Source: Laetmonice hystrix (lineage: Eukaryota). From it: 64,000 bases of DNA. The stretch lies in contig OZ249447.1 in NCBI GenBank assembly GCA_965235115.1, positions 20,274,001 through 20,338,000 on the forward strand. Reading direction: 5' to 3'. How positions within the stretch are numbered: the first letter of the stretch is position 1; each line of letters starts with the position of its first letter. A program made the position numbers and the translations under genes. Shown piece after piece: positions 22,405 through 62,552 of this stretch. Under the pieces are notes generated by a model. That model searched no databases, was not told where the DNA came from, and saw nothing but the letters and a program-made list of their open reading frames with translations.

Positions 22405-23871
22405 AGATGTATGATGTTGTGGTTGTGTTTTTCCGCAGGTTCTCCGGGTGAAGGTTCAGGAGTGCAGTCAGTACATGACATGTGACAGATGTATGATGTT
22501 GTGGTTGTGGTTTTTTCCAGGTTCTCCGGGTGAAGGTTCAGGAGTGCAGTCAGTACATGACATGTGACAGATGTATGATGTTGTCGTTATGTTTTCCTCT
22601 AGGTTCTCCGGGTGAAGGTTCAGGAGTGCAGTCAGTACATGACATGTGACAGATGTATGATGTTGTCGTTATGTTTTCCTCTAGGTTCTCCGGGTGAAGG
22701 TTCAGGAGTGCAGTCAGTACATGACATGTGACAGATGTATGATGTTGTGGTTGTGTTTTTCTCCAGGTTCTCCGGGTGAAGGTTCAGGAGTGCAGTCAGT
22801 ACATGACATGTGACAGATGTATGATGTTGTGGTTGTGTTTTTCTCCAGGTTCTCCGGGTGAAGGTTCAGGAGTGCAGTCAGTACATGACATGTGACAGAT
22901 GTATGATGTTGTGGTTGTGTTTTCCTCCAGGTTCTCCGGGTGAAGGTTCAGGAGTGCAGTCAGTACATGACATGTGACAGATGTATGATATTGTAATTGT
23001 TGTTTTTTCTAGGTTCTCCGGGTGAAGGTTCAGGAATGCAGTCAGTACATGACATGTGACAGATGTATGATGTTGTGGTTGTTGTTTTTTCCAGGTTCTC
23101 CGGGTGAAGGTTCAGGAGTGCAGTCAGTACATGACATGTGACAGATGTATGATGTTGTGGTTGTGTTTTTCTCCGGGTGAAGGTTCAGGAGTGCAGTCAG
23201 TACACGACATGTGACAGATGTATGATGTTGTCGTTATGTTTTCCTCCAGGTTCTCCGGGTAAAGGTTCAGGAGTGCAGTCAGTACATGACATGTGACAGA
23301 TGTATGATATTGTGGTTGTTGTTTTTTCTAGGTTCTCCGGGTGAAGGTTCAGGAGTGCAGTCAGTACATGACATGTGACAGATGTATGATGTTGTGGTTA
23401 TGTTTTCCTCCAGGTTCTCCGGGTAAAGGTTCAGGAGTGCAGTCAGTACATGACATGTGACAGATGTATGATATTGTGGTTGTTGTTTTTTCTAGGTTCT
23501 CCGGGTGAAGGTTCAGGAGTGCAGTCAGTACATGACATGTGACAGATGTATGATGTTGTGGTTATGTTTTCCTCCAGGTTCTCCGGGTGAAGGTTCAGGA
23601 GTGCAGTCAGTACATGACATGTGACAGATGTATGATATTGTGGTTGTTGTTTTTTCTAGGTTCTCCGGGTGAAGGTTCAGGAGTGCAGTCAGTACATGAC
23701 ATGTGACAGATGTATGATATTGTGGTTGTTGTTTTTTCTAGGTTCTCCGGGTGAAGGTTCAGGAGTGCAGTCAGTACATGACATGTGACAGATGTATGAT
23801 GTTGTGGTTGTGTTTTTCCCCAGGTTCTCCGGGTGAAGGTTCAGGAGTGCAGTCAGTACATGACATGTGAC
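22405..23871 (+). repeat. 82-bp tandem array, 18 copies; unit = last 34 nt of intron (with acceptor AG) + first 48 nt of the PSI1 exon
   Basis: Exon-start copies at 22439, 22521 ... 23742, 23824; the copy near 23170 has lost its AG by deletion. Confidence 0.95.
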
Positions 23872-26367: not shown

Positions 26368-26551
26368 CTGACCCTGACGATCCAGAACCTTCCCAGTCTG
26401 ACCAATGGTGGATACGAGTGTGCATTCACAGGATATGGAGTTGTACGCACGACCGTGGCAACTGTAGGCAATGGACACCAGAACGACACTACGCTCATCA
26501 TGTGTGAAACACCCTACCCGAACCTTCTCCCCATCATCCCGACCGGCCGAG
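26368..26551 (+). CDS. PlexA: Plexin-A exon, TIG-like domain after PSI1 (LTLTIQNLP...MCETPYPNLLPIIPTGR), phase 0-1
   Basis: tgttcag|CTG ... CGAG|gtaagt. Confidence 0.9.
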
Positions 26552-27228
26552 GTAAGTTACCGAGTTGTCTGACAGGTATCCCAACCCTCTCCCCATCATC
26601 CCAACCGGCCGAGGTAAGGTACCGAGTTGTCTGACAGGTATCCCAACCCTCTCCCCATCATCCCAACCGGCCGAGGTAAGTTACCGAGTTGTCTGACAGG
26701 TATCCCAACCCTCTCCCCATCATCCCGACTGGCCGAGGTACAGTACCGAGTTGTCTGACAGGTATCCCAACCCTCTCCCCATCATCCCGACCGGCCGAGG
26801 TAAGTTACCGAGTTGTCCGACAGGTATCCCAACCCTCTCCCCATCATCCCGACCGGCCGAGGTAAGGTACCGAGTTGTCTGACAGGTATCCCAACCCTCT
26901 CCCCATCATCCCGACCGTCCGAGGTAAGTTATTGAGTTGTCTGACAGGTATCCTAACCCTCTCCCCATCATCCCGACCGGCCGAGGTACATTACCGAGTT
27001 ATCCGACAGGTATCCCAACCCTCTCCCCATCATCCCGACCGGCCGAGGTACGTTACCGAGTTGTCCGACAGGTATCCCAACCCTCTCCCCATCATCCTGA
27101 CCGGCCGAGGTAAGTTACCGAGTTGTCCGACAGGTATCCCAACCCTCTCCCCATCATCCTGACCGGCCGAGGTAAGTTACCGAGTTGTCTGACAGGTATC
27201 CCAACCCTCTCCCCATCATCCCGACCGG
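26514..27228 (+). repeat. 62-bp tandem array, ~11.5 copies; unit = last 38 nt of exon + donor GT + 24 nt ending in AG
   Basis: GT at 26552, 26614, 26676 ... 27172 (period 62). Confidence 0.95.
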
Positions 27229-27780
27229 AAGTGGTCTGACAGGTTTCGGAGTGTGTCCCCGACCGGGAGAAGTAAGGCAGTGATTGGAAGTGGTGTGACA
27301 GGTTTCGGAGTGGTTTCGGAGTGTTCCCCGACCGGGAGAAGTAAGGCAGTGATTGGAAGTGGTCTGACAGGTTTCGGAGTGGTTTCGGAGTGTTCCCCGA
27401 CCGGGAGAAGCAAGTCAGTGATTGGAAGTGGTCTGACAGGTTTCGGAGTGGTTTCGGAGTGTTCCCCGACCGGGAGAAGTAAGGCAGTGATTGGAAGTGG
27501 TCTGACAGGTTTCGGAGTGGTTTCGGAGTGTTCCCCGACCGGGAGAAGCAAGTCAGTGATTGGAAGTGGTCTGACAGGTTTCGGAGTGTTCCCCGACCGG
27601 GAGAAGCAAGGCAGTGATTGGAAGTGGTCTGACAGGTTTCGGAGTGGTTTCGGAGTGTTCCCCGACCGGGAGAAGCAAGTCAGTGATTGGAAGTGGTCTG
27701 ACAGGTTTCGGAGTGTTCCCCGACCGGGAGAAGCAAGGCAGTGATTGGAAGTGGTCTGACAGGTTTCGGAGTGGTTTCAG
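27229..27780. repeat. 69/59-bp tandem array, ~8 copies, diverged relative of the 62-bp unit
   Basis: gaagtggtctgacaggtttcggagt(ggtttcggagt)gttccccgaccgggagaag(t/c)aag... Confidence 0.9.
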
Positions 27781-30700
27781 AGTGTGTCAGTACGTCATTA
27801 ATCAGATAAAAAGGATCAATGTCCGTGAACAGATCACCAGGATCTGGCTGTGGGATTAGCATGGCTGACTTAATGTGTTTTTCTCGTGGGATCTTGACAA
27901 GTTTGTTACTTGCTGTTTTACTGTGTGTGATTATCACAATGAAGAAGGATCTCTGCGCGAAGTTAAATCTTTTGGATTTTCAGCGTTTTTCTACAGAAGA
28001 ACAATATTTTCCCATCTTGGTTTGTTCAGTATTAGCATTGATTGCAGGAAAATATTCGCCATGCGAGTGTTCTTTTGTCCTCGTTCCAAGAGAACAAATT
28101 CACAACGTAATAAACTGGGTATTTTCATGTCATTTGCACAATAGTTGAATTTCATTTTGTCATTGTGATTTCGAAGAAGTTTATTTGGACGGCTAGAGTC
28201 CCTGTGGTTTGTTTCGACGATAGGCTGAGCCAACAAGTAATCACCGTTGGACTGTCTGAGTGTTGGAAACGGTCCCAACAATGAGGCATTGCGAGGCGGC
28301 AGTTGAAAGCAGAGGCCTTTGTAATGTGAAGCCTTTGTGTATGGGAACTTCACATCGCAATCCTTCACATGGAACAGTGTTCCCAGTCTGTGTCCAGGCG
28401 ACTATCGGGAGGACAATATGGAATGTAAGGGTGTAGTATTCCAGGCTTAATGTTTCATCAGAGAACTTTGATAATCTTATCTTCATGCATTGTCCACCAT
28501 AGTCTCTGCATATAAATCCCTTAAATACAGCTATCTCTACCCTTGTCAAGCTGGAAGCAGAATTCAACTTTTCTTGCTAATTTGTCAGCAAGCAATAACT
28601 TTCGATTATGGCTGCCAGCTGAACAAGCATTTGGTATGGATGAACGTAATTGAATAGATTTCATATATATTTATTATTCATGGTCTCCATTGTTAGGAAG
28701 CAATGATCCAATTGTAATCGAACAAGAGCGACTTTGGAGGCAATATCACCATATTCCATAACATCTTGAGTATGCCATCATCATTGGCTGCAGCGCTCAC
28801 TAAAAATATGATGGATATTTTAAAATAGGTTTCAGCGGGTTTAATGAAGAGGCTTATATGATAACTGCCTCTTTATATTTGCTCGCTGATGGAACTGCAG
28901 GAGAAAAGAAACGTTTCTTTATGAAATATTTAGGGTCTATGAGATTGGAGAGGTGAAGTTTGAAACTTGCGACAAGCGCAGTACAAGTATATGTATACGT
29001 GGTAGTCTACCTCCATGTGTAGCATTTACTGAGCTTGTTCACCTTTACAAATCATAATCATAATATGTATAATGGGTCCATGATGTGCAATTTTCATATC
29101 AAAAGCGTTTTTTTGGGGGGGCAAAGAAGTCGAACGACATGTTTTTTTCCTTTGATTATAATTAATGTAATCATAGCCTTTCCCTTGAAAAAAATGTCGA
29201 ATGACATTTCCCTTTGATTATAAGTAATGTAATGATAGCCTTTCCCTTGAAAACGGATCAACAGTGTTCTCTTCACAAGAAATGGGACTACAATCCATTT
29301 TCTGAAGACCTGACATCGAGTTTTTACCCTCAAAAAAGACGAGCGTTCATTTTTTACGAAGAAGCAAACAGGGATTCTGGGGAACGTAATTTAATACAGC
29401 TCTATTCGGTCGGGCCTGACCCTGAAGAGAAAACATTCAGATGTAGAAGACGCTTTTAATGTATTTTGCCCGTTCTGGGTATGATATAAGGCCCTCCCCC
29501 CAGCCCCCACCCCCTCATTCTCCTAAGAAAGCTCCCCTCCAATCTCCTAAGAAAGTTCCCTCTCCAATCTCCTAAGGAAGGAACTCCTGTGACAGCCCTT
29601 ATTACCTGGGAGTCCGAGCAAGTCTGTGGTAGAAAGTAATTCCGTACATAGCCGTAGTTGAGTCCCGGTAACCATGTAGCACGCAGACCGGGTAGAATCA
29701 GGATCGTTTTCTACGGCTGGGCAGAGACAACAAACAGTGAGACTGAAGCGTTGGTCCAACTGAAGCAAACCAAGACAAACGGAAGGCTCTGGCTTGTTCT
29801 CGACCGAACGTCAGATGCAATCAGTGATACGGAGGAACAATCCGTTTTCAAGCATCGCCTACACTCACAGTAATTGCGCATAGTTAAGCCGCTTTGTAGG
29901 TAGAAAATGTGATTTATTGGCGGTGATAATGGCATACAGCCCCTGTAGGTAAGATCATTTATGTGGTTGCCAGCACCACTTTCACAGCTGAGCCCTTGAA
30001 AAACTCATCCAATGTTCAGTGGGTAACGGGAAACGGCCTGAAGCCTCAGCAACCAGAACACCGTCCATTATAAACGGACACGGGCATCAGGATTCCATCG
30101 GTCCCGGCCAAAACAGGGCTGAGAATTACTTCCATTTACTTTTGTAATCTTTCAAGGCAAGCTCACATTTATCAGTTGTTAATGTTGACTTTGCATGCGG
30201 GAGGCGGACGGTGGGAGACCGGGCGTATGTTACTCGGCAGTCGGCGGCATTGTTTCGTTTAGAGGACGGATACACGCGAGGATTCGGAGACATTGTTACC
30301 TGCTCATATGTAAGGAAGTAAATCGTGAGATTGATAATGTTCAGGATGTTCACAATTTTGGTATTTTATAGGTGGAATTCTTAGCGGAAGGTGAAGATGA
30401 GAGAATGTATATTGTGAGGAGTAAGTCTGGCAGTGGCCGGGGATGTCGGGAGAAATTATCTGTCTCGTTTAGCGGGCATTCATTGCTCGACATTCACCTG
30501 AAAAGCTGGCAGGAAAAGGAGAGTTTGTTTCTTGAGAGAGCAGAAACAAAAGGTCAGTCCCATAAACAAAAGGGCGGTAGATGGCCCCAGGCATCTATAT
30601 TGCAACGTGAGACCGACCGTAGATGGTCTGTTCCTGGATTTTTGTATGCCGGAATGGCATGACATTTTCCAAGTACATTCAAATATTGCCAATTCCCCAG

Positions 30701-39786: not shown

Positions 39787-40680
39787 CATTTTAAGCTTAA
39801 GTTAGAACATAATTTAAAAAAAACCGAGCCGGGGTCGGCGGGGGGGGGGGGGGCTAAAGGACCGGGAGTCCTCGAAACCAGCGTCATGCAGGACTTTCAG
39901 TCTGGCTTCCTAGACTAGAAAAATCCAATTGTTACATTGGTCAAATTGTATTTTAAGCCTCGATTGTATTTTGATTACGTTTTTATATGCTAGAACAACG
40001 GAATACTGTTATCCTGTGTGACTTACAATCAGATTTTCGTTTTCGACAGAAATAAGCATTCCAGACTAACAAACCCATCTACCGGACCTTTTTCTTAAAA
40101 TAAAACATTTTTCTTTGTGGTATCTGAATTGAAACTAAGATAAATGAATCTATTTGTAGACGGGGAGCAGTACTTGCCAGGGCAAGAATTATTCTGTGCG
40201 CCAGTTTTTTTAAATACTCACAATTAATGACATGTATTTCGTCCGTCAATCTGGACTTTGCTAAGCATCAAGCCAATCTGCATGTGATCTATAACTCAGG
40301 TGTGGTCTAAATCTGCTGTTTTCTCTACTACAGTAAACTCCTGCTTATTTATCAAAGTCCGTCTGAGGATGTTTGGTGATAATAAAGGCCTTTGTCGTTA
40401 ATATAATACCGTAAACCCAGTCAGCACTTTATCAGTGATATCATCGAGGATCAATATGTATAACGTAAACCACAGGATACTTTTGTCCCCCCCCCTTCCA
40501 AATACCTTCAAGACTTCTGTATTGAAATTGCCCTCGACTCGTACTAAGCCACCTAACATTACCTTTCATTGTGGTTAGTTCTTCAGTTTTTAAGTGTTTG
40601 TTTATTTTCACGTTTCCCCCCCCCCCCCGATATTTGCCCACCTGTAGTGTACATCAGCTCCCTGACCTCCCACGTTGTAC

Positions 40681-42210
40681 TCCGTATTCTCCATCCAGTG
40701 TGCCACAACCAGCTACCAGTCCGTATTGTATGTTTCCCTACCAGTGTGGCACCACCAGCAAGCAGTCCGTATTGTATGTTTCCCTACCAGTGTGCCGCAA
40801 CCAGCAAGCAGTCCGTATTGTATGTTTCCCTACCAGTGTGCCACAACCAGCAGGCAGTCCGTATTGTATGTTTCCCTACCAGTGTGGCACCACCAGCAAG
40901 CAGTCCGTATTGTATGTTTCCCTACCAGTGTGCCACAACCAGCTACCAGTCCGTATTGTATGTTTCCCTACCAGTGTGCCACAACCAGCTACCAGTCCGT
41001 ATTGTATGTTTCCCTACCAGTGTGCCACAACCAGCAAGCAGTCCGTATTGTATGTTTCCCTACCAGTGTGCCACAACCAGCAAGCAGTCCGTATTGTATG
41101 TTTCCCTACCAGTGTGCCACAACCAGCAAGCAGTCCGTATTGTATGTTTCCCTACCAGTGTGCCACAACCAGCAAGCAGTCCGTATTGTATGTTTCCCTA
41201 CCAGTGTGCCACAACCAGCAGGCAGTCCGTATTGTATGTTTCCCTACCAGTGTGGCACAACCAGCAGGCAGTCCGTATTGTATGTTTCCCTACCAGTGTG
41301 CCACAACCAGCAAGCAGTCCGTATTGTATGTTTCCCTACCAGTGTGCCACAACCAGCAAGCAGTCCGTATTGTATGTTTCCCTACCAGTGTGCCACAACC
41401 AGCAAGCAGTCCGTATTGTATGTTTCCCTACCAGTGTGCCACAACCAGCAAGCAGTCCGTATTGTATGTTTCCCTACCAGTGTGCCACAACCAGCAGGCA
41501 GTCCGTATTGTATGTTTCCCTACCAGTGTGGCACAACCAGCAGGCAGTCCGTATTGTATGTTTCCCTACCAGTGTGCCACAACCAGCTACCAGTCCGTAT
41601 TGTATGTTTCCCTACCAGTGTGCCACAACCAGCAAGCAGTCCGTATTGTATGTTTCCCTACCAGTGTGCCACAACCAGCAAGCAGTCCGTATTGTATGTT
41701 TCCCTACCAGTGTGCCACAACCAGCAAGCAGTCCGTATTGTATGTTTCCCTACCAGTGTGCCACAACCAGCAGGCAGTCCGTATTGTATGTTTCCCTACC
41801 AGTGTGGCACAACCAGCAGGCAGTCCGTATTGTATGTTTCCCTACCAGTGTGCCACAACCAGCTACCAGTCCGTATTGTATGTTTCCCTACCAGTGTGCC
41901 ACAACCAGCAAGCAGTCCGTATTGTATGTTTCCCTACCAGTGTGCCACAACCAGCAAGCAGTCCGTATTGTATGTTTCCCTACCAGTGTGCCACAACCAG
42001 CAAGCAGTCCGTATTGTATGTTTCCCTACCAGTGTGCCACAACCAGCAAGCAGTCCGTATTGTATGTTTCCCTACCAGTGTGCCACAACCAGCAAGCAGT
42101 CCGTATTGTATGTTTCCCTACCAGTGTGCCACAACCAGCAAGCAGTCCGTATTGTATGTTTCCCTACCAGTGTGCCACAACCAGCAAGCAGTCCGTATTG
42201 TATGTTTCCC
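40681..42210. repeat. 46-bp minisatellite, ~33 copies
   Basis: ccagtgtgccacaaccagcaagcagtccgtattgtatgtttcccta; explains the three overlapping 514-619 aa ORFs. Confidence 0.97.
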
Positions 42211-42253
42211 CAGCCCTGACGATGCCGGTGTAGGCTGTATAACCTGCCAATAC

Positions 42254-42405
42254 TTTCTCCTCAGATCCTGCTCTCAGTTTCTGTATTATAACCTGTTGTC
42301 TCGGTTTCTCCTCAGATCCTGCTCTCAGTTTCTGTATTATAACCTGTTGTCGCGGTTCCTCCTCAGATCCTGCTCTCAGTTTCTGTATTATAACCTGTTG
42401 TCTCA
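42254..42405. repeat. 51-bp tandem repeat, 3 copies
   Basis: tttctcctcagatcctgctctcagtttctgtattataacctgttgtctcgg. Confidence 0.9.
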
Positions 42406-42491
42406 GTTGTTTAGCCTGAACGAATTGTGATTAGCTACAGCCGGTGTTTGAAATCTGAGTCCTGCTTATGTTTGTTTTTTTTTGTTTGCAG

Positions 42492-54028: not shown

Positions 54029-54180
54029 TTCATGCCGAGGACGGGGCCGTTGAAGGGTGGCACACGGGTGACTATTGACGGTGAAAACCTGGGCAAAGTT
54101 TATGATGACATTAAAGCCGGGGTACAGGTGGCTGGACAACCGTGTGAGCCAGACCCTGCCGCTTACAAACCCGCTCAAAG
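54029..54180 (+). CDS. PlexA: Plexin-A exon, IPT1 first half (FMPRTGPLKGGTRVTIDGENLG...PAQ), phase 0-2
   Basis: gtttgacag|TTC ... AAAG|gtaagc; PxxGPxxGGTxVTIxGxNLG. Confidence 0.95.
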
Positions 54181-54340
54181 GTAAGCTCAAACTATACACA
54201 GACCACTATAGGGTCGGCATCTTATATCTGGGGGATTTCAGGACAAGCTTTACACAATATGATCAGATCTGGAAAAAAACGTGGCTAATGCGGAATTTAA
54301 CATTATGAGCGATTGGAGTATTTTTTGGGTATATTTAACC

Positions 54341-55704
54341 GGTGTCAGTGATGATGGTTACTATAATGTGTTTGATGTCGACAGGGTGGTGTGTATAACG
54401 GGTGTCAGTGATGATGGTTACTATAATGTGTTTGATGTCGACAGGGTGGTGTGTATAACTGGTGTCAGTGATGATGGTTACTATAATGTGTTTGATGTCG
54501 ACAGGGTGGTGTGTATAACGGGTGATGATGGTTACTATAATGTGTTTGATGTCGACAGGGTGGTGTGTATAACGGGTGTCAGTGAGGATGGTTCCTATAA
54601 TGTGTTTGATGTCGACAGGGTGGTGTGTTTAACGGGTGTCAGTGAGGATGGTTACTATAATGTGTTTGATGTCGACAGGGTGGTGTGTATAACGGGTGTC
54701 AGTGAGGATGGTTCCTATAATGTGTTTGATGTCGACAGGGTGGTGTGTATAACGGGTGTCAGTGATGATGGTTACTATAATGTGTTTGATGTCGACGGGG
54801 TGGTGTGTATAATGGGTGTCAGTGATGATGGTTACTATAATGTGTTTGATGTCGACGGGGTGGTGTGTATAATGGGTGATGATGGTTACTATAATGTGTT
54901 TGATGTCGACAGGGTGGTGTGTATAACGGGTGTCAGTGATGATGGTTACTATAATGTGTTTGATGTCGACAGGGTGGTGTGTATAACGGGTGTCAGTGAG
55001 GATGGTTACTATAATGTGTTTGATGTCGACAGGGTGGTGTGTATAACAGGTGTCAGTGAGGATGGTTCCTATAATGTGTTTGATGTCGACAGGGTGGTGT
55101 GTATAATGGGTGATGATGGTTACTATAATGTGTTTGATGTCGACAGGGTGGTGTGTATAACAGGTGTCAGTGATGATGGTTACTATAATGTGTTTGATGT
55201 CGACAGGGTGGTGTGTATAACTGGTGTCAGTGATGATGGTTACTATAATGTGTTTGATGTCGACAGGGTGGTGTGTATAACGGGTGTCAGTGATGATGGT
55301 TACTATAATGTGTTTGATGTCGACAGGGTGGTGTGTATAACAGGTGTCAGTGATGATGGTTACTATAATGTGTTTGATGTCGACAGGGTGGTGTGTATAA
55401 CGGGTGTCAGTGATGATGGTTACTATAATGTGTTTGATGTCGACAGGGTGGTGTGTATAACAGGTGTCAGTGATGATGGTTACTATAATGTGTTTGATGT
55501 CGACAGGGTGGTGTGTATAACGGGTGTCAGTGATGATGGTTACTATAATGTGTTTGATGTCGACAGGGTGGTGTGTATAACGGGTGATGATGGTTACTAT
55601 AATGTGTTTGATGTCGACAGGGTGGTGTGTATAACGGGTGATGATGGTTACTATAATGTGTTTGATGTCGACAGGGTGGTGTGTATAACGGGTGTCAGTG
55701 ATGA
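54341..55704 (+). repeat. 60/54-bp tandem array, 23 copies; unit = 30 nt intron end with acceptor + first 30 nt of the IPT1b exon; open in the plexin frame
   Basis: tggttactataatgtgtttgatgtcgacag|ggtggtgtgtataacgggtgtcagtgatga; translates as (GVSDDGYYNVFDVDRVVCIT)n. Confidence 0.97.
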
Positions 55705-55780
55705 AGTCAAGTCGGGCAAGGTGGCAGTAACTGTGCGAAACCACTACAGCTTCACGTCTAGTCAGGAGTTCTCCTACGTG
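55675..55780 (+). CDS. PlexA: Plexin-A exon, IPT1 second half (RVVCITGVSDEVKSGKVAVTVRNHYSFTSSQEFSYV), phase 2-0; minimal form using the last acceptor of the array
   Basis: gtcgacag|G GTG ... GTG|gtaagt; 20 further in-frame copies of the acceptor upstream make the true 5' boundary uncertain. Confidence 0.85.
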
Positions 55781-56413
55781 GTAAGTAGCCCCCACCCCCA
55801 CCCCATCACCCATTACAGAACCCCCTCCCCCTCCCCGACCCCTCCTTGGCCTTTACATGGGGAGACGCTTGGAATGAGGCCAAGAGCAATGAAACACCTT
55901 AGGGGCTTTTATCCTAGATTGCAAACCCACCGTATCAGGCTTGGATGATTTGATAACGGTCTAAATGGGATGCTGACAAGATTGAATTGCGTTTTTGGCT
56001 CTGAAATGGTCACGTCAATTAATTATCTTAGGTTGAATCCCTGATGATTGAGAAACGTAAGAGATGTCAACTAATGAGTCTACACTGACCTGCTCTCTAG
56101 TCATTTCCTCCCGTCTGTGTCTGAATAATTCAAAGTCATATAAGCAGCTGTAGCCAAGCTGACCCAAACATTCGGAATTTTCAGTCGGGGGGGGGGGGGC
56201 AAGGTCCAGAATTTTCAGTGATATAAGCAGCTGTAGCTAAGCTGACCCAAACAGGGGCGGATTCGGAATTTTTAGTCTGGAGGAGGGGGGGACCCAAGGT
56301 CCAGAATTTTCAGTCGCGAGGCAGGACCCAAGGTCCAGAATTTTCAGTCGGTGTTCAGAATGTTTGGAAGGGATAGATCAAGGCATGAGAGTTGATATCT
56401 GTTTGATTCACAG

Positions 56414-56550
56414 AGACCGGTGCTCACCGACTTCTCCCCGACCCGTGGTCCCCAGTCGGGCGGTACGAGGCTGACCATCGCCGGGGAACATATGAATACA
56501 GGCACAAACACGACCATCACTGTGGCCAGACTGCCCTGTTCTCTCATCAT
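56414..56550 (+). CDS. PlexA: Plexin-A exon, IPT2 (RPVLTDFSPTRGPQSGGTRLTIAGEHMNTG...CSLI), phase 0-2
   Basis: attcacag|AGA ... AT|gtaagt. Confidence 0.94.
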
Positions 56551-58384: not shown

Positions 58385-58775
58385 GGTCAGTTCCTGAACC
58401 TAGCACTGACCAGCGACGACGTTGTGGTCAAGGTGGGCTCGGCCGACTGCGTTGTGACAACCATCAGCAGTACCTACCTCATCTGTACCCCACCCGGCCC
58501 GCAAGTCGAGGGTGTCGGCACCAACCCGCGGGTCACCGTCCACGTGGGCGCCAACCTCACCCACAACATCGGCAGCCTCAAGTACGAGAGCATGCAGATC
58601 CTGCCCTTCCCAGCCATCATCGGCATCGGGGCTGGAGGCGGCATCCTCGTCCTCATCATCATCATCGTCTGCATCGCTTACAGACAGAAGTCGCGGGAGA
58701 GCGACAGAGTCATGAAGCGCATGCAGAATCAGATGGACGTGTTGGAGGCGCGAGTCGCCAAGGAGTGCAAGGAGG
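58385..58775 (+). CDS. PlexA: Plexin-A exon, IPT4 + transmembrane helix + juxtamembrane coil, phase 0-1
   Basis: tctccag|GGT ... GAGG|gtaagt; TM AIIGIGAGGGILVLIIIIVCIAY followed by RQKSRESDRVMKRMQNQMDVLEARVAKECKE. Confidence 0.96.
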
Positions 58776-59805: not shown

Positions 59806-60438
59806 TTTGTGGGAGAGGTATTGTGATCGGGCTTAGGGGTGTGTTTGTGGGAGAGGTATTGTGATCGGGCTTAGGGGTGTGTTTGTGGGAGAGGTATTGT
59901 GATCGGGCTTAGGGGTGTGTTTGTGGGAGAGGTATTGTGATCGGGCTTAGGGGTGTGTTTGTGGGAGAGGTATTGTGATCGGGCTTAGGGGTGTGTTTGT
60001 GGGAGAGGTATTGTGATCGGGGTTAGGGGTGTGTTTGTGGGAGAGGTATTGGGATCGGGGTTAGGGGTGTGTTTGTGGGAGAGGTATTGTGATCGGGGTT
60101 AGGGGTGTGTTTGTGGGAGAGGTATTGTGATCGGGCTTAGGGGTGTGTTTGTGGGAGAGGTATTGGGATCGGGGTTAGGGGTGTGTTTGTGGGAGGGGTA
60201 TTGGGATCGGGGTTAGGGGTGTGTTTGTGGGAGAGGTATTGTGATCGGGCTTAGGGGTGTGTTTGTGGGAGAGGTATTGGGATCGGGGTTAGGGGTGTGT
60301 TTGTGGGAGAGGTATTGGGATCGGGGTTAGCGGTGTGTTTGTGGGAGAGGTATTGTGATCGGGCTTAGGGGTGTGTTTGTGGGAGAGGTATTGGGATCGG
60401 GGTTAGCGGTGTGTTTGTGGGAGAGGTATTGGGATCGG
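59806..60438. repeat. 38-bp G-rich minisatellite, ~16.5 copies, filling most of an intron
   Basis: tttgtgggagaggtattg(t/g)gatcggg(c/g)ttaggggtgtg. Confidence 0.96.
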
Positions 60439-61932: not shown

Positions 61933-62552
61933 CTGTTACTGGTTACGTTTGCTATCGTCTTACAGTGTATTGTTACTGGTTACGTTTGCTATCATCTTAC
62001 AGTGTACTGTTACTGGTTACGTTTGCTATCGTCTTACAGTGTACTGTTACTTAGTTACGTTTGCTATCGTCTTACAGTGTATTGTTACTGGTTATGTTTG
62101 CTATCATCTTACAGTGTACTGTTACTGGTTACGTTTGCTATCATCTTACAGTGTAATGTTACTGGTTACGTTTGCTATCATCGTACAGTGTACTGTTATT
62201 GGTTACGTTTGCTGTCATCTTACAGTGTACTGTTCCTGGTTATGTTTGCTATCATCTTACAGTGTACTGTTACTGGTTACTTTTGCTATCATCTTACAGT
62301 GTACAGTTACTGGTTACATTTGCTATCATCTTACAGTGTACTGTTACTGGTTACGTTTGCTATCATCTTACAGTGTACTGTTACTGGTTACGTTTGCTAT
62401 CATCTTACGGTGTACATGTGTACTGTTACTGGTTACGCTTGCTATCATCTTACAGTGTACTGTTACTGGTTACGTTTGCTATCATCTTACAGTGTACTGT
62501 TACTGGTTACGTTTGCTATCATCTTACAGTGTACTGTTACTGGTTACGTTTG
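61933..62552. repeat. 37-bp minisatellite, ~17 copies, filling most of an intron
   Basis: tgttactggttacgtttgctatcatcttacagtgtac. Confidence 0.96.

Follow-up and report, generated by a model that had tools for sequence, protein, structure and literature searches.

Introduction

Minisatellites that span the boundary between an intron and an exon have already been described, namely the amphioxus 'mirages' and the human F7 IVS7 repeat. The mirages, found in Adh3, TnC, the globin genes Gb6 and Gb9, and PGBD5, copy splice sites, and splicing was undisturbed as judged by RT-PCR (PMC3087553; PMC3902484). In the 37-bp VNTR of human F7 IVS7, the pseudo-sites are functional, yet splicing takes the authentic exon-adjacent donor alone (PMC1557585). 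Here we describe an array of this kind, array C, at a 3' splice site of a plexin gene in a 64,000-nucleotide stretch of the genome of Laetmonice hystrix (contig OZ249447.1, positions 20,274,001 to 20,338,000), hereafter the window. By its anatomy as read from the sequence, array C is a member of the 'mirage' minisatellites, being a head-to-tail minisatellite with the authentic junction inside its unit and the authentic copy contiguous with the exon. Array C stands out in its size and in being in frame. It is most probably a tolerated boundary-spanning minisatellite of the mirage type that probably varies in length, lacks an evolved function, and leaves the last acceptor in use.

Results

Anatomy of the junction repeat

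Tandem Repeats Finder (TRF) reported array C as one minisatellite with a period of 60, 23.3 copies, and 94% matches, together with a higher-order period of 354 bp. The array and the exons that flank it are as follows (a slash marks a splice junction).

54029-54180, plus strand: exon encoding the first half of plexin IPT3, with donor AAAG/gtaagc, ending in phase 2 (Pfam TIG, E = 5.5e-6; Plexin-A1 match; tblastn with the related plexin P0030)
54181-55674, plus strand: intron, 1494 nt given the last acceptor (from the sequence)
54336-55704, plus strand: array C (TRF; unit-by-unit alignment; genome-wide uniqueness)
54791-54858, plus strand: two adjacent units in which the acceptor AG is changed to GG (motifs at 54791 and 54851)
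55675-55780, plus strand: real exon encoding the second half of IPT3, with acceptor gtcgacAG/G and donor GTG/gtaagt (gap-free alignment of the 54180 to 55675 product with P0030)
56414-56550, plus strand: next exon, start of IPT4 (Pfam TIG, E = 7.5e-9; tblastn)

A pattern scan for the motif GTCGAC[AG]GG located 23 copies, the first at 54377 and the last at 55667, with the acceptor AG present in 21 of the 23 and GG in the other 2. The copies are spaced 60 nt apart, except for five cases of 54 nt, and by these spacings all of the acceptors share one phase. The first base of the exon-like part falls at 54385 in the first copy and at 55675 in the last, which places the two 1290 nt (430 codons) apart. 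Unit-by-unit alignment identified positions 1-30 of the unit as the opening 30 nt of the real exon, which is identical to the consensus here, and positions 31-60 as the last 30 nt of the intron. The junction piece (30 nt of intron and 30 nt of exon) is present 22 extra times in the array, and the sequence around the 21 acceptors does not differ for at least 30 nt to either side. Each unit contains branch-point-like motifs and adds one Cys, and no good donor could be read from the sequence of the unit. Only the last copy, at 55675, runs on into unique exon sequence and a donor. A search of the 627-Mb genome found the repeat to be unique to its locus.

No stop interrupts the plexin frame between 54281 and 55948, a span that takes in the whole of array C. 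The remaining two plus-strand frames meet TGA and TAA within one unit, as read from the consensus, and one frame of the minus strand is open as well (394 aa). The array is in frame and stop-free because the length of the unit is a multiple of 3 and half of the unit is exon. The open frame across it can be put down to repetition, since the minus strand is also open and other minisatellites in the window carry ORFs of 150-600 aa. On all of these points the original prediction agrees with our results: the pattern scan and unit alignment returned the copies of the acceptor with its 30-nt exon start and their division into AG and GG, the spacings returned the unit lengths and the single phase, the ORF list and the consensus returned the stop-free plexin frame and the stops in the other two, and the extra Cys per unit was found as well. 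Pfam matches of the array C ORF to DUF5049, DUF4479, MapZ_C2, and RALF were rejected as repetition artefacts, as no single stretch was significant. Elsewhere in the window, an intronic minisatellite of 46 bp x 33 at 40569-42430 holds three overlapping open frames of 514-619 aa, long ORFs that arise from repeats alone.

Host gene

The tblastn matches of P0030 follow the plexin order along the window, with PSI1 at 23.8-25.0 kb, IPT1 at 26.4-37.1 kb, PSI2 at 42.5 kb, IPT2 at 45.5 kb, PSI3 at 53.5 kb, and IPT3 to IPT6 at 54.0-58.6 kb. This is the layout of a plexin, in which the PSI and IPT domains precede a transmembrane segment and the cytoplasmic region. Its juxtamembrane segment matches Plexin-A1 and Plexin-A3, and the best matches among solved structures were Plexin-A1, A4, and A2 (E values of 5e-15 to 6e-11), with Plexin-B2 at E 0.83; the Sema domain lies outside the window. 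Judged by these matches, the host gene is probably a class-A-like plexin. The exon at 54029-54180 corresponds to residues 835-880 of the mouse Plexin-A1 ectodomain, or residues 11-56 of the Plexin-A1 chain 5l7n (393 aa). The split domain had been named IPT1 in the original prediction; the Plexin-A1 match and the tblastn matches, which place PSI1, IPT1, PSI2, IPT2, and PSI3 upstream, correct this to IPT3 (ectodomain domain 7).

If array C were reduced to a single unit (1290 nt fewer), the intron that begins at 54181 would measure 204 nt, and it would have the same length if the first acceptor were used. The donor GTG/gtaagt, 106 nt downstream of the last acceptor, is strong, and no other acceptor of the array has one.

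The product predicted from joining 54180 to 55675 and 55780 to 56414 aligns to P0030 as a single block, without a gap over 130 residues. One added unit amounts to an 18-residue insertion relative to all four of the related proteins aligned, which are partial plexin-like sequences from a search of protein representatives and are distant fragments (best identity 52%). Among the junctions that can be formed from donor 54180, only 54180 to 55675 is predicted to give a product that is gap-free against the related plexin. In two plexin paralogues on the same chromosome, the corresponding position in IPT3 is interrupted by an intron of ~320 nt that contains no array.

G000:C13:9860118-9863258: paralogue L012, sharing the IPT3 intron position
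G000:C13:20104734-20107862: paralogue L013, sharing the IPT3 intron position

An unrelated array of 93 bp x 10.9 is located just downstream of the second IPT3 exon in L012. A search of the public protein collection returned no homologues of the 50-aa exon. The same collection, searched among proteins of 264-840 aa, held no protein carrying the array C repeat, which is a weak blank given that the window's own ORF is unlisted too.

Two further junction-copying arrays in the same gene

Splice junctions of the plexin gene are copied by two more arrays.

22405-23871, plus strand: array A, 82 bp x 18, copying 51 nt from the start of the PSI1 exon together with a strong acceptor; of its acceptors (22439-23824), the real one is that before 23824
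26521-27228, plus strand: array B, 62 bp x 11.4, copying the end of the IPT1 exon and the donor GAG/GTAAGT; of its donors (26551-27171), the real one is that after 26551

Each of the 16 decoy acceptors of array A meets a stop within 43 codons. The 10 decoy donors of array B all lead to a frameshift or a stop, and a perfect GTAAGT is retained in 5 of the 10. Only the exon-contiguous site of either array can yield plexin, and therefore a working gene would need that site to be chosen among up to 17 identical ones. Arrays A and B, out of frame and full of stops, are tolerated equally to array C.

Tandem arrays are common in the window, where 22 of them occupy 21% of the length and the unit is divisible by 3 in 9. 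Among the three junction-copying arrays of the plexin gene, the unit is a multiple of 3 in one, and one in-frame array among three is the chance expectation. Under random placement, 0.7-1.2 junction-spanning arrays would be expected in the gene as against the 3 observed (P 0.04-0.12), at most a mild excess over chance that leaves room for a non-random origin.

Other arrays were noted near exons of the same gene. Right after array B, at 27242-27785, lies a 69-bp array whose unit (CCCCGACCGGGAGAAG.AAGG...) resembles the array B junction and which may be an older, decayed junction copy. Two arrays at 59806-60438 (38 bp x 16.7) and 61933-62552 (37 bp x 16.5) start ~25 nt past the donors of exons for the cytoplasmic domain, leaving the donor itself out. 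Arrays seem to lie near the ends of exons.

Variation among units

When the 22 upstream units were compared with their own consensus, differences were found at 20 of about 1290 positions. Behind these variants are a single 6-bp deletion and seven distinct substitutions. Read in the plexin frame, 5 of the seven change the residue (I>L, T>M, D>E, Y>S, and R>G) and 2 are synonymous; the R>G substitution is the one that abolishes the acceptor AG, and it is present in two units. Across the 22 upstream units, the exon-like half was not found to be better preserved than the intron-like half, and the unit variants gave no signs of selection. Judged by these comparisons, the variants look neutral. Near-identity among the last nine units suggests that the array expanded or was homogenised recently.

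Read support and haplotypes

Short-read contigs from the same sample enter array C from both flanks at the expected positions and break at the edges of the array. Pieces on the array had a word depth of 600-760, compared with ~50 in the flanks, and the depth was 12-15 times that of the flanks in the three runs X1-X3, which consist of short DNA-type contigs; array C is thus multi-copy in the reads. With regard to allele length, the contigs do not span the array and the depth ratios show the multi-copy state alone.

In the sequenced individual, the intron flank at 54201-54284 shows heavy heterozygosity: ~10 substitutions and 3 indels, all at half depth, fall within 85 nt, and a contig of the second haplotype departs at 54317 with a short insertion. 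The searches for sequencing runs returned X1-X4, which come from a single sample and are not recorded as RNA. The small run X4 (59 million letters) contained 28% of the words of the plexin exon at 58385-58775 and did not come up for a 2.8-kb stretch of which half is array, a weak and indirect point in favour of the last acceptor. This run may be an RNA-type data set of the species.

Discussion

Origin of the array and choice of acceptor

The anatomy of array C shows that a 60-bp piece across the 3' splice site (30 nt of intron and 30 nt of the second IPT3 exon) was duplicated in tandem and then expanded; unequal exchange or slippage would have brought it, with homogenisation, to about 23 units. 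Because the unit includes the 3' splice site, 20 extra AG acceptors would now lie in the intron, and the last copy would by construction be continuous with the rest of the exon. The spliceosome would take this last acceptor, and the upstream copies would remain intronic. Use of the last acceptor is suggested by the strong donor 106 nt downstream, which is found only there and would be favoured under exon definition, by the out-of-frame arrays A and B, which demand the same choice, and by the published mirages and the F7 IVS7 repeat, which behave in this way.

Upstream acceptors could also be used at a low level beside a dominant last one, and minor in-frame isoforms with 18-430 extra residues in IPT3 would then be made as noise without function, possibly mildly harmful. 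Such use is mechanistically possible, given 21 identical sites, branch-point-like motifs in each unit, and an intron of only 204 nt with the first acceptor. In classical experiments with duplicated splice sites, splicing can prefer the copy closest to the donor. In addition, there is no strong donor within the unit, so re-splicing could not correct an upstream choice, and the frame is open, hence the products would not be cleared by nonsense-mediated decay. Mirage arrays, however, gave no aberrant products in published RT-PCR (PMC3087553, PMC3902484), and we regard leaky splicing of this kind as unlikely.

The original prediction had gone further and proposed that the length of the ectodomain could be tuned, with 0-430 extra residues depending on which acceptor is chosen or how long the VNTR allele is. 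If acceptor choice were regulated, or if alleles differed in length, a variable, Cys-bearing insert in the stalk might alter the geometry or the autoinhibition of the plexin ring. The acceptor ladder is indeed in frame and stop-free, and an AlphaFold2 model built from a single sequence, with seven units and the exon half, predicted a confident beta-hairpin stack (pLDDT about 90 over the units), which makes a regular extension conceivable in physical terms. Models of repeats from a single sequence are unreliable, however, and structure comparison of the seven-unit model returned no similar solved fold (best E 0.37), so the model was not counted in favour of a function. The in-frame state is at chance level among the three arrays of the gene, arrays A and B are out of frame yet tolerated, the unit variants look neutral with two AGs lost, and only the last acceptor gives a predicted product collinear with a related plexin. 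The insert would also split an Ig-like IPT domain mid-way and add up to 22 unpaired cysteines, whereas related proteins and paralogues have no insert at this place; the blank in the public protein collection, weak as it is, points the same way. We therefore consider functional length tuning highly improbable, and the idea of a length-tunable receptor found no support in array C. The compound case, in which upstream acceptors are meaningfully used and the length of the array varies between alleles, such that plexin-A IPT3 would carry a heritable, variable stack of 18-20-residue beta-hairpin units, is very unlikely. The possibility that array C was collapsed, expanded, or misjoined in the assembly draws on the fact that short-read contigs cannot span it, but the excess depth in three runs, the entry of contigs from both flanks as expected, and the structured unit variants, including the 354-bp higher-order period, leave an assembly artefact hardly credible. 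A young, neutral array of which only the last AG is used, which the original prediction had named as its alternative, appears to fit both the sequence evidence and the published repeats (PMC3087553, PMC3902484, PMC1557585).

Implications

If array C is such a tolerated minisatellite, it amounts to a natural experiment on the choice of 3' splice site, with 21 in-frame acceptors that are identical over 60 nt. Every choice of acceptor would escape nonsense-mediated decay and would hence be visible in cDNA, and the same gene has built-in controls in an out-of-frame acceptor ladder (array A) and a donor ladder (array B). For annotation, the locus is a warning that in a genome that is one-fifth minisatellite, long open frames and 'perfect' intronic splice sites are expected by-products. 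Plexin biology would be touched only if the upstream sites are really used. Were upstream use and variable length both true, in-frame junction minisatellites would give this repeat-rich genome a way of bringing new coding repeats into extracellular domains.

Comparison with known systems

Array C has features in common with several kinds of repeat and splice-site arrangement. Like NAGNAG and other short-distance tandem acceptors, it presents alternative in-frame 3' splice sites close together. NAGNAG acceptors lie 3 nt apart and have one branch point and pyrimidine tract in common; an assignment of array C to this type was ruled out, as its acceptors are 54-60 nt apart and each may carry branch-point-like motifs of its own. 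Coding VNTRs resemble array C in being in frame, in having a unit that is a multiple of 3, and in that both could vary in length. In coding VNTRs the repeat is inside an exon and is always translated, whereas array C is intronic unless an upstream acceptor is chosen.

In the 37-bp VNTR of F7 intron 7, the first element spans the exon-intron boundary, and identical functional pseudo-sites follow the real donor (PMC1557585). Its direct counterpart in the plexin gene is the donor ladder of array B (26521-27228). F7 and array C differ in that the F7 repeat copies donors with the productive copy first, whereas array C copies acceptors with the productive copy last.

The amphioxus mirages of Adh3, TnC, BflGb6/BflGb9, and PGBD5 are like array C in that the unit spans the intron-exon boundary, splice signals are present in many copies, and the authentic copy is located at that end of the array which adjoins the exon. 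Both 3' and 5' boundaries are affected in amphioxus, by units of tens to about 160 bp that evolve in concert (PMC3087553, PMC3902484). Array C lies in a different gene and has 23 units, compared with the 3-6 given for BflGb6. Unlike the amphioxus mirages, array C has a unit that is a multiple of 3 and free of stops, so that use of a decoy acceptor would, from what the sequence tells, result in in-frame insertions.
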